Origin: Octopus sinensis
Lineage: Eukaryota
Reading direction: 5' to 3'
NCBI RefSeq assembly: GCF_006345805.1
Contig: NW_021824366.1
Coordinates: 1-18,978, forward strand
DNA length: 18,978 nucleotides
In this document: positions 2,073 to 17,648 of the stretch, piece by piece
Numbering within the stretch: the first letter of the stretch is position 1
Layout of the letters: the number at the start of each line of letters is the position of its first letter
The notes under the pieces: generated by a model
What the model was told of the DNA's origin: nothing
Databases searched by the model: none
What the model saw: the letters and a program-made list of their open reading frames with translations, nothing else
Made by a program: the position numbers and the translations under genes

Positions 2073-2106
<34 letters not shown>

Positions 2107-2153
2107 CAATGACAAATCTCAGAGCGAGTTATAAACAGTAGCAGCAACACATC

Positions 2154-2510
2154 GTGACGTATATTTGCCATTTGAATATGGCTAACCCCTAAGGGTGGAT
2201 GCTACTGTAGTTTGTAGCCCCAGGAAGACACCTCCTCCAGCTGGCTATAGACACACTTTCTGTGCCCTATAAAGGAACCGAATTCTCATCGACAACTATG
2301 ATTGCCACACGCCGATGACGGGTCAATACCCTGAAACTCGAGTCCGTGTGTATCATAAGTTGAAGACGGGAAGGATGGCTTCCCTTCGCAAATACTGATA
2401 GGGCACAGAAAGTGTGTCTATAGCCAGCTGGAGGAAGTGTCTTCCTGGGGCTACAAACTACAGTAGCATCCACCCTTAGGGGTTAGCCATATTCAAATGG
2501 CAAATATACG

Positions 2511-2514
<4 letters not shown>
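2154..2514. mobile_element. 361-bp foldback element: 117-bp inverted arms around a 127-bp ribozyme-containing spacer
   Basis: 2154-2270 is the reverse complement of 2398-2514, with one mismatch (C2232 opposite A2436). (TA)n lies at about 2075-2104 and 2515-2558. The inverted repeat is directly seen; mobility is inferred. Confidence 0.85.
2294..2361 (+). ncRNA. Minimal type I hammerhead ribozyme motif (Penelope-type) with U4C core variant
   Basis: Stem I CACACG(2306-2311)/CGTGTG(2345-2350), extended by TATGAT/ATCATA. Core CCGATGA at 2312-2318. Stem II GGGT-CAAT-ACCC. GAAA at 2333-2336. Stem III AC-[TCGA palindrome]-GT. Cleavage triplet GUC with C2344. Confidence 0.75.
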
Positions 2515-2555
<41 letters not shown>

Positions 2556-2560
2556 TATCC

Positions 2561-2760: not shown

Positions 2761-3090
2761 CAAATATTTTGCTATACATATATAGATTATATGCATTTAT
2801 GTAGCAAAATATTTGGATTAAACACACTTTAAGCCAAATCACAACAATTGTTTCTGTGCATTATCATCAGCTGTTAGTTTCTAAGTGTTGTGAGATTGGG
2901 GTTAAAACCTGTTCTCTCCCTCTTCTTCTATAATAATTTCTTGTATGAATTCTGAGTACACTAACGGTTTTCCATATGCATATTCTGGAAGAAAATTCCT
3001 GCTCTTGGACAGCTTATAGTAGCCGATAATCGTAGAGAAGTCTTGGAAAGCAAATTACAAGGTTATTACCATCGTCATATAAAGTAATAT
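2761..3090 (-). mobile_element. Possible 3' end of a Penelope-like element with degenerate hammerhead motif
   Basis: Minus strand reads FNPNLTTLRN-stop (like the FxPxLN end of PLE GIY-YIG ORFs), followed within a few nt by CTGATGA-TAATGCACA-GAAA-C-AATT-GTT (plus 2843-2870). Stems I and II are decayed. Confidence 0.35.
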
Positions 3091-4107: not shown

Positions 4108-4143
<36 letters not shown>

Positions 4144-4144
4144 T

Positions 4145-4205
<61 letters not shown>

Positions 4206-4351
4206 ATTATATATATATGTATATATATTATGTATATAAATATACATATATATAATTATTATATATATGTATATATATAATATGTATATATACTATATGT
4301 ATAATTATACATATATAATATATATATATGTATATATATATCTATATATAC

Positions 4352-4384
<33 letters not shown>
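4108..4384. repeat. Degenerate (TA)n microsatellite
   Basis: Direct reading. Confidence 0.97.
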
Positions 4385-4664: not shown

Positions 4665-5510
4665 ATGTGTGTGGGTGCGTGTGTGTGTGCAAGGATGACA
4701 AGTGTGTTTGTGCGTGCGTGCGTGTGTGTGTGTGTGTGTATGTATGGTGAATAATAAGCATGGCAAGTTAGCTGTCATAAGGCACTCCTTTATGACAGCT
4801 AGCTTGTTTGTATCCAGCCAGGTCAAAAAACAAAGGGGTATATGTGTGTGCGTGTAGGTATATGTATCATGTGTGTGTGTTGTTTGTAGTGTGTGTGTGT
4901 GCATGTGTGTGTTCGTGTGTGTATGCGTAGAGTGTGGGTGTGTGGCGAGTAACTGTGCTTAACCTAGTGTATGTGTGCGTGTGTGCTTGTACGTGCGTGT
5001 GTGTGTGTAGGGATGTATGTGTGGGTTCATTTGTGTGAGTGTGTATGTATGTACGTGTATGTGTGTGCGTGTACGTGTGCGTTTGTATGTGTTTATGTGT
5101 ATGTGTGCATGCGCGGATAGGTGTATATTGTGTATGTATATCTGTCGGTGTATATGTGAGTTTGTGTGTGTTTGTACGTGTGTATGTGTGTGTGCGTGTA
5201 TAGTATATATATGTAAATGTGTGTGTGTGTGTGCGTGTGTGTGTACGTGCGTGCGAGTGAATGTATGTATATATGTGTGCGTGTGTGTACAATGTAGAGG
5301 CTTATATGTGTGTTTATATGTTTATATGTGTGTATGTATGTATGTATGTATGTATGTATGTATGTATGTATGTATATATGTATGTATGTATGTGTGTATG
5401 TGTGTAAGTGTGTGTGTGTAGATAAATGCACAGATAGACACATGGAAAGCTAAGCAGATATTTGCACAATGTGTGTGTGTATGTGTGTGTGATATATATA
5501 TATATATATA
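4665..5510. repeat. Long degenerate (TG)n/(TATG)n microsatellite field
   Basis: Direct reading; source of several spurious ORFs. Confidence 0.95.
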
Positions 5511-11915: not shown

Positions 11916-12420
<505 letters not shown>

Positions 12421-15041: not shown

Positions 15042-16945
15042 AACGAACCTGGCATGGGTGGGGCCCTGATCAACTTGGATCAATCAAAAGCCTTTGATAG
15101 GGTGGACCATCGATACTTGGAGGCAGTCCTGAGAGCGGCTGGTTTCGGTCCCGTCTTCCGCGGCTGGATAGCTGCCTTGTACAGAGGCATCCGTTCGGTA
15201 ATTCGCGTAAATGGACATCTATCGAGACCTTTCGACATTGCACGTTCGGTCCGTCAGGGATGCCCCTCTCTGGCGCTTCTATACGTATTGACTCTTGAGC
15301 CACTACTGCGGAAGCTGGCGACTCTAAGGGGCATCCCGCGAGAATTGGGATGCGGGACGAGCGTGTCTGCATACGCGGACGACGTCACGGTCATAGTGTC
15401 TAGCCACGAGCACATCGAGCTGGTCGGCGAGACACTGAAAACTACGAAGCGGTGACAGGAGCGAAAATCACCGGGAAAAGTCAGTGGGCTTGCGACTAGG
15501 CACCTGGAGAAGCAGGCCCATGCCGTCCACCAGCGCCTCCGTCGTGGGACGCTGGACCGACGGCCCGGTTGAGTTGCTCGGGGTCTGGTTTGTCCGGACC
15601 TCCAAGTGGAGAAGAACTGGAACGAGATAACGAGTAGGGTGGTGACTCTCGCCCGGCAATGGGCCGAGAGGAAACTGTCCCTAAAAGGTCGAGCGGAGGT
15701 GGCGAACACGTACATCGCGTCCGTCATCTACTACTACCGCCTGACCGTCGTACCTTGTCCCGACCCTACATCACCAAACTACAACGCATCCTCTTTCGCT
15801 TCTTGTGGAAAGGATGCGTCCCGATGGTCAGGCGATCCATTTGCTGTCACACCCGTTAAAAGGAGGGCTGGCATGCCGTGGTTGATGATGCGCAGACACG
15901 CGCTGAGACTGCGACATCTCTGGCTCTATGTAGACGACGGTGAACAGGTGTGGTCGCCGTTTGTGAGGCACGCTTTCCCGCAGCTCGTCTCCATGACCGA
16001 ACTGCAGTCGTGGATCAAAAGAGGCCGAGGAAGGGCGAATGGCACCGCGAGTGTCGCGTTGCTCTCAAGCAAGTCTGCCGTCCTGGGTCGACCTTAAGTG
16101 ACTTCAACACAACCAAAGCATTCTATAGGGGTTTAGTGGAGGGGAGGTACGACGACGAGCTCGGGGCGAACCTGGACGTCGACGAGGAGTACCTGACCCG
16201 CCTGTTCGGGACGACTTTCGGGCCAGGGCCCATGGACAACTTCCAGAGATCCCTGGCCTGGCAGTGCTACCGAAAGCGCTACCCGTTCGGGATAAGCTCT
16301 ACAGACACGGCTCGAGAAACACGGGGCCGACCTGCCGAGATGCGGTCAGAGCGACGAAACCGTTCTGCACGCACTCGTTCAGTGTCCAACAATTTCCGAC
16401 CTGTGGGCTTATGTCGAACAACTGCTGTCACGTGTGGGACGAGTCGGGTTATCAGCTGAGTCTATCGTCAATATTGTCACGCCCCTCCCTTCCTTCAACG
16501 GGAAGGAAGAGCTATTTTCATCATCCTTGTGGCTATGGCGAAAGAATGTATCTGGTGGACGCGTCTGAAAGGATTGGAGACAAACACTTTCCTCTCTGGT
16601 CAATCTCTCATCAACTTCTTCAAGTACCACTTGAAAAGGAAAGTGAGAGTAGAGAGGCAAGTTTTTGTCTAGCGAATGTTTTAAAAAAAGATGGGTGAAT
16701 GTTGCAAGAATGGCACGTATGAATGACGAAGCCACCTTGAGCATAGTCCTATGAACCCAGAAATCGAAAACAGAGAGTTACTTATTTGCAAAAAAAAAAA
16801 AAAAAAAAAAAAAAGAATATAAAGTGACTTCATTGACCGAGGTACCGTGGTCTTTTCCGTAGGCTTTTCTTTCCACGGGTAAACCTCACCTGTCCTCCCC
16901 TTTACACTTCATATTGACATTTCTGTGATAACGATCCCTATTGAT

Positions 16946-17170: not shown

Positions 17171-17171
17171 T

Positions 17172-17199
17172 ATCTATCTATCTATCTATCTATCTATCA

Positions 17200-17273
<74 letters not shown>

Positions 17274-17452
17274 CGATATATATATATATATATATATTAT
17301 ATAATATATATATATATATATAATATATATAGGTACAATTATATGTACATTTTACTCTATCTCTTCATATTCTTCATATTTATATCACGTTCTTGTCCAA
17401 ACCCACTACCGTTAATTTCTCCTTCATCGCCTATAAAGATACTTATTTATTA

Positions 17453-17533
<81 letters not shown>

Positions 17534-17570
17534 CTATCTATCTATCTATCCATCTATCTATCTATCTATC

Positions 17571-17648
<78 letters not shown>
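17172..17648. repeat. Two (TCTA)n arrays and a (TA)n run around a short unique block
   Basis: Arrays at about 17172-17275 and 17454-17648. Confidence 0.95.

Follow-up and report, generated by a model that had tools for sequence, protein, structure and literature searches.

In this study, we analysed an inverted repeat that carries a hammerhead ribozyme (HHR) motif at its tip, located in a window of 18,978 bases (the whole stretch of DNA under analysis). To the reading that we favour, we give an even chance: positions 2106-2514 would be one young insertion of the RNA of an HHR-bearing retroelement, of the Penelope-like element (PLE) or non-LTR retrozyme kind. The pattern is an ordinary one and not a new class of element; it adds one more example and changes nothing for hammerheads or PLEs.

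A repeat search of the window recovered arms at 2151-2270 and 2398-2517, which are 120 nt long, 98% complementary and separated by a spacer of 127 nt, with two mismatches (2153/2515 and 2232/2436). When the arms are taken as 117 nt (2154-2270 and 2398-2514), the pair 2232/2436 is the single mismatch, and both the repeat search and the arm alignment thus bear out the 117-bp inverted arms with one mismatch described in a first-pass annotation made from the sequence alone. The same annotation had called the element young, and the arm identity of 99% agrees: dated by its arms, the insertion is very recent. As RNA, the inverted-repeat element has a predicted folding energy of -273 kcal/mol (z = -27 versus shuffles), and blastn within the 18,978-base window found one occurrence of it. 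A palindrome artefact of sequencing was considered and rejected, as the arms are just 117 nt long and unique sequence continues on both flanks. The parts of the insertion and its flanks are as follows.

2075..2105, no strand: (AT)15 array, left half of a split microsatellite (TRF)
2106..2153, minus strand: extension of 48 nt, non-repeated, lying between (AT)15 and the left arm; candidate PLE-type tail, putatively the 3'-most part of a minus-oriented copy
2154..2270, minus strand: left arm, complementary to 2398-2514 with one mismatch; putative 5'-truncated partial copy, minus-oriented
2271..2397, plus strand: centre, 127 nt, forming an imperfect hairpin whose tip holds the hammerhead; present only in the putative plus-oriented copy
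2398..2514, plus strand: right arm, putatively the 3' part of the plus-oriented copy; ends without a tail
2515..2558, no strand: (TA)22 array, right half of the split microsatellite, abutting the right arm (TRF)

When position 2105 is joined to 2515, an uninterrupted in-phase TA array results, and pure TA arrays make up only about 3% of the window. Because the two flanks join in this way, the inserted DNA is most simply taken as 2106-2514, which would be 409 nt with the asymmetric order of 48 nt, arm, centre and arm. The 48-nt extension is one-sided, without a counterpart on the right. With a left flank ending in CACATC (on the 2150-2153 side) and a right flank starting with TATATA (on the 2515-2518 side), no target-site duplication of 2, 3, 4 or 8 bp was found at either candidate boundary. 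Within the extension, the stretch 2135-2148 shares ACAGTAGCA with 2460-2473 in the right arm (12/14 over 14 nt, blast E = 0.044, of marginal significance); in the RNA proposed below the two stretches would be complementary, and a stem near its 3' end could form. The window as a whole is very dense in microsatellites, with 48 TRF rows that include (TA)n, (ATCT)n, (TATG)n, (TG)n, (TATC)n and (AG)n arrays (for example at 42-191, 691-1376, 4108-4384, 4870-5419, 11917-12044 and 17171-17648), and this density accounts for many long spurious open reading frames.

Complementarity is 99% in the arms and drops sharply, to about 65-70%, where the centre begins, which is the base of the centre hairpin. 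The centre (2271-2397) has an MFE of -37.8 kcal/mol (z = -3.2), and its self-complementarity is weak, with 12 of 500 shuffles scoring equally well in self-alignment. No long reading frame was found within the element, and no tRNA-like SINE head in its arms or elsewhere in it. The tip of the centre hairpin reads as a type I hammerhead, with the following parts.

2298..2356, plus strand: type I hammerhead motif with closing stem (sequence reading, covariance model R1, descriptor statistics and dimer prediction)
2298-2302 / 2352-2356, plus strand: closing stem AUGAU/AUCAU (read from the sequence, as are the next seven parts)
2303-2305 / 2351, plus strand: internal loop UGC/U
2306-2311 / 2345-2350, plus strand: helix I, 6 bp, CACACG/CGUGUG
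2312-2318, plus strand: core box CCGAUGA
2320-2323 / 2328-2331, plus strand: helix II GGGU/ACCC, loop CAAU
2333-2335, plus strand: GAA
2336-2343, plus strand: helix III, pairs A2336-U2343 and C2337-G2342, palindromic loop UCGA
2344, plus strand: C17
2344..2345, plus strand: predicted self-cleavage site, 3' of C17 (alignment to HHRs with cleavage sites marked in the source paper)

In its canonical form, the type I HHR of metazoans has a helix I of 6 bp, a helix II of 4 bp and a helix III of 1-2 bp with a palindromic loop of 2-4 nt, and works as a dimer (Cervera and de la Pena, PMC4209133). The stretch 2306-2350 has the same three-way junction with an open helix I and helix lengths of this type. 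Its bases match the invariant core (C3 U4 G5 A6 N7 G8 A9, G12 A13 A14, A15.1-U16.1, H17) at every position except U4, which is C (base 2313), and at the base of helix II, C2319.U2332 stands in place of the conserved G10.1-C11.1 pair. Alternatively, C2319 may be read as an extra nucleotide as in the min-HHRs of PLEs, in which case the pair becomes G2320.U2332. The complete type I hammerhead claimed in the first-pass annotation is thus complete in topology, but its core is not fully canonical, with C4 and with C.U at 10.1-11.1. From hammerhead mutagenesis, changes at U4 are known to reduce activity strongly. With C4 and the C.U pair at the base of helix II, this copy of the HHR is probably weak or inactive. 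An insertion so recent can have gathered only about one substitution in its 127-nt centre, so some of the core deviation, at least, would already have been present in the source copy.

When two copies of 2298-2356 were folded together (ViennaRNA), the predicted lowest-energy dimer was a double hammerhead in which the intermolecular helix III has 8 bp (ACUCGAGU), at -37.9 kcal/mol versus 2 x -16.4 kcal/mol for two monomers. The lowest-energy predicted dimer of a coral HHR, used as a control, was likewise a double hammerhead. As a monomer, 2298-2356 is predicted to form helix II with a probability of about 9% and helix III not at all.

To judge the motif against background, a covariance model (R1) was built from four retrozyme HHRs that had been studied experimentally (coral Amil224, mussel Mg353 and axolotl Ax353 and Ax330; sequences from PMC7229834, Supplementary Table 2), with the candidate left out; a second, six-sequence model was set aside because MAFFT had misplaced the gaps of helix III. 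R1 ranks 2306-2350 (plus strand) first in the window, at full length, with 20.3 bits and E = 5e-4, followed by a next-best hit of 13.0 bits, and the background maximum in 53 kb of other eukaryotic contigs is 11.6 bits, which gives the candidate a lead of 7 bits over the whole background of about 72 kb. The positive control was a pair of clear tandem HHRs on another contig (L003), which score 38.5 and 29.0 bits with R1. A literature-shaped descriptor, which allowed one core mismatch and an open closing pair and had been relaxed after the candidate was seen, matches the candidate only in the window and has no match in 116 million first-order Markov background positions. With a looser descriptor the candidate is again the sole match, given one core mismatch and an open closing pair, and shuffled windows yield 0.09 matches each (0.013 as good as the candidate), so this descriptor is too permissive to decide. 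A search with Rfam, of which the first-pass annotation had proposed the Hammerhead_1 model, gave no hammerhead match at the gathering threshold or at E <= 10 with the window, a 471-nt or a 127-nt query. As the clear L003 HHRs themselves score only 20-22 bits with Rfam, as Hammerhead_3, against a gathering score of 48.5, the silence of Rfam on 2306-2350 weighs little.

It might be argued that the likeness to a hammerhead is a coincidence in the loop of an unrelated inverted repeat, with helix I and the closing stem as residual symmetry of the palindrome. The two departures in the core or closing pair (C4 and C.U), the silence of Rfam, the weak self-complementarity of the centre, the 0.01-0.09 matches of the loose descriptor per shuffled window and the late relaxation of the stricter one all point that way. 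Weighed against these are the canonical layout in its exact form (helices of 6, 4 and 2 bp, a palindromic tetraloop, GAAAC...GUC), which is the one absent from the 116 million background positions, the lead of the motif in R1 and the insensitivity of Rfam to this class of HHR, and we consider coincidence very unlikely. On its sequence, the motif is very probably hammerhead-derived; the hammerhead reading of the first-pass annotation proved sound, given the layout of published invertebrate retrozyme HHRs, the R1 score and the empty descriptor background.

A core-only look-alike of a hammerhead lies at 2841-2874 (minus strand), 330 nt from the element. It reads CUGAUGA-N9-GAAAC-AAUU-GUU without helices I and II, scores 11.5 bits with R1, and has GCACAGAAA in common with the inner end of the arms (2257-2270 / 2398-2411). 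We estimate that about 0.4 such core pairs are expected per window, and its candidacy as a second hammerhead was dismissed as chance.

The control contig L003 is a 250-kb eukaryotic ENA contig, on which the two clear type I hammerheads lie 325 nt apart as a tandem retrozyme-like pair (15869-16239, minus strand). Each of them is preceded by a tRNA-like B-box stretch (GGTTTCGATCCC), and the downstream unit ends about 12 nt past the cut site, straight into a (TA)17 array. Their cores also depart from the canonical one, with CUAAUGA (G5 to A) in one and an A.C mismatch at the base of helix II in the other. Just upstream of the first HHR unit, at 16291-16357, an inverted repeat of about 22 nt (AATTGCACAATA...TTACTT) surrounds a short (TA)7 array, and several sub-threshold matches to microRNA families of Rfam fall on the same stretch.

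Relatives of the element were searched for in several collections, and genes that might have moved it in the window. The 21-25-mers of arm and centre had no match in IMG/VR, JGI metagenomes or GTDB genomes, collections outside which the host genome itself lies, and a 68-aa open reading frame spanning arm and centre had none among 5.8 billion proteins and 1.84 billion representatives. Blastn of the element against five other eukaryotic loci likewise gave no match. The window holds no direct repeat of the unit and no second HHR, and the tandem arrangement that marks a retrozyme was accordingly not found in it. No reading frame for a PLE reverse transcriptase (RT) or a GIY-YIG endonuclease was found in the element or the window; the copy, if PLE-related, would be non-autonomous or heavily truncated. 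The only RT in the window is a LINE fragment, 12.5 kb from the element. This frameshifted non-LTR RT fragment (15054-16700, plus strand; RVT_1 E = 1.5e-14) lies in a stretch of 56% GC, and the relative closest to it comes from a metagenome contig of 717 bp, with an identity of 89% in protein and 83% in DNA. Its relatives on ENA contigs have an Exo_endo_phos endonuclease upstream, which identifies it as an APE-type LINE and not a PLE. For a second open reading frame, no homologue was found.

PLE insertions are strongly 5'-truncated and often have an immediately adjacent inverted 5'-truncated copy, with which they form inverted repeats; they carry an HHR near the 3' end and a tail of 30-40 bp, often at one end only, and their bias towards microsatellites hides target-site duplications, with (TA)n documented for Naiads and microsatellite bias cited for Neptune (Craig et al. 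2021, PMC8557442). The locus resembles them in several respects. The arms 2154-2270 and 2398-2514 form the inverted repeat of two adjacent partial copies, with the centre in one orientation only; the extension is one-sided; the HHR lies about 10^2 nt upstream of the inferred start sites of reverse transcription; and the site is a microsatellite, (AT)15 and (TA)22 flanking the insertion and joining in phase, with no discernible target-site duplication. It differs in that the locus and the window have no RT or GIY-YIG reading frame, in that the extension, a candidate for element sequence, is 48 nt and not 30-40, and in the size of the insertion, which at only 409 nt makes the inverted copies overlap into a hairpin with the HHR at its tip. 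The first-pass annotation had recognised no described family with this architecture, yet each of its features has been described for PLE insertions: the HHR, the inverted 5'-truncated copy alongside, the tail at one end and the microsatellite as target. Its general background, namely that HHRs with a palindromic helix III cleave as dimers and that inverted segments occur at PLE insertions, agrees with the literature.

The second comparison is with the non-LTR retrozymes of invertebrates (Mg353 and Amil224; PMC7229834), which share with the locus, position for position, a helix I of 6 bp with an internal loop and a closing stem, a helix II of 4 bp, a helix III of 2 bp with a palindromic tetraloop, and a GUC site. 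Their units are also non-coding, a few hundred nt long, and have a helix I that extends into a longer hairpin. The candidate aligns with the HHRs of Amil224, Mg353, Ax353 and Ax330 without any change of layout, and it shares its two-pair helix III, in the form GAAAC-(palindromic tetraloop)-GU-H, with mussel Mg353 and axolotl Ax353. However, non-LTR retrozymes are tandem head-to-tail repeats of 170-400 nt with an HHR in each, whereas the locus has a single HHR and an inverted duplication, and its core has C4 and the C.U pair at the base of helix II. A natural precedent for a mismatch at this place is the U.U in about 60,000 axolotl motifs. The axolotl HHR_Amex2 (retrozyme Ax353) resembles the candidate in its helix III of 2 bp with a palindromic tetraloop and in having a pyrimidine-pyrimidine mismatch at the base of helix II, but its mismatch is U.U where the candidate has C.U, it has a canonical CUGAUGA box, and its units are tandem repeats of 350 nt. 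Animal retrozymes have been reported as derived from PLE terminal repeats (2026 preprint).

On the favoured reading, the template RNA would consist of the centre with the HHR in sense (2271-2397), followed by the arm sequence (2398-2514) and a 48-nt 3' end (the reverse complement of 2106-2153), and both strands of a cut (TA)n target would prime reverse transcription on it. The first cDNA would start from the distal site, keep the 48-nt tail and end, 165 nt long, where the centre hairpin has its base, leaving the minus-oriented copy 2106-2270, and the second would start 48 nt further in and run to 2271, leaving the plus-oriented copy 2271-2514. The stretch of 117 nt present in both cDNAs would form the near-perfect inverted arms. 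The HHR would be the element's own processing ribozyme, of the invertebrate type, which forms its helix III only together with a second copy, as a dimer. This scheme of two cDNAs would explain why the arms are near-perfect, why complementarity is lost abruptly at the centre, why there is one HHR and a one-sided extension, and why the TA array is split. Two-strand priming, the RNA template with its orientation and the PLE machinery are what we infer from this arrangement. In work with a purified PLE protein, the protein cut both target strands, extended them and began reverse transcription at two internal sites, with the tail as the stretch between these (PMC11167929). The start sites of that PLE lie roughly 90 nt downstream of the HHR cut; for those proposed here, the distance downstream from the predicted cut would be 170 and 218 nt.

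Several observations speak against a PLE origin. This is a single locus with no second copy in the collections searched, and the window has no PLE RT or GIY-YIG gene; a preference for (TA)n is documented for Naiad PLEs, which are without canonical HHRs, and for the HHR-bearing Neptune only a microsatellite bias is cited. In addition, the 5' end of the plus-oriented copy (2271) differs from the HHR cut site (2345), and U4 is C, with no Rfam hammerhead match at E <= 10. As regards the machinery, twin priming of the LINE type would produce the same geometry, with the TA arrays as 3' tails of two copies rather than as target, and fits the locus equally well.

Other routes to the same hairpin differ in how the right arm or the whole repeat arose. 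A solo HHR fragment (about 2106-2397) may have lain beside a (TA)n array and gained the right arm later, by a local fold-back duplication during repair or replication, which we regard as unlikely. The route itself, to which we attach the same low probability, would have a broken 3' end snap onto the imperfect hairpin of the centre, copy 2270 back to 2154 and rejoin the TA array. In its favour, the switch from about 65-70% to 99% complementarity is abrupt and coincides exactly with the base of the centre hairpin, (TA)n arrays can pair with themselves, and the single copy in the window, with none in the other collections searched, suits a local event. However, an extra template switch would be required at 2154, short of the 48-nt segment, the joining of both flanks into one in-phase TA array would go unused, and PLE integration is already known from the literature to leave inverted partial copies behind. 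A different origin would be a non-autonomous DNA transposon of the MITE or foldback type, with 117-bp terminal inverted repeats and HHR-derived sequence carried or captured inside. Its small size and long, near-identical inverted arms are indeed those of MITEs and foldback transposons, since long near-perfect terminal repeats and a size of 361-367 bp are typical, and the right flank starts with TA. To our knowledge, the termini of the arms resemble no known superfamily motif. No target-site duplication can be recognised between CACATC and TATATA, or at 2150-2153 / 2515-2518, the insertion delimited by the split TA array has 48 nt outside the left repeat, which makes it asymmetric, and an HHR has no role in cut-and-paste transposition; a transposon of this type is distinctly unlikely. 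The same asymmetry is unlike a terminal-inverted-repeat transposon, and the 'retrozyme/MITE-like hybrid' of the first-pass annotation is not needed.

It is highly improbable, in our judgement, that the hairpin is the design of a family, in which a non-autonomous transcript would be a perfect dsRNA stem of about 120 bp with a dimer-dependent hammerhead as its cap. In one version of this idea, to which we give just as little credence, cleavage at the apex would control the entry of the stem into small-RNA or RNA-editing pathways; in another, no more probable, the element would be a circular RNA folded into a rod whose pairing is unusually perfect.

If an insertion of PLE- or retrozyme-type RNA is the true reading, the locus would be a clean and young natural record of two-strand priming, as the purified PLE protein shows in vitro, with two inverted cDNAs from one RNA whose differing outer ends mark two start sites of reverse transcription, 48 nt apart. 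The 117-bp near-perfect hairpin left by the insertion could yield double-stranded RNA and local DNA instability, and on the same condition, HHR-bearing retroelements would have been recently active in this genome.
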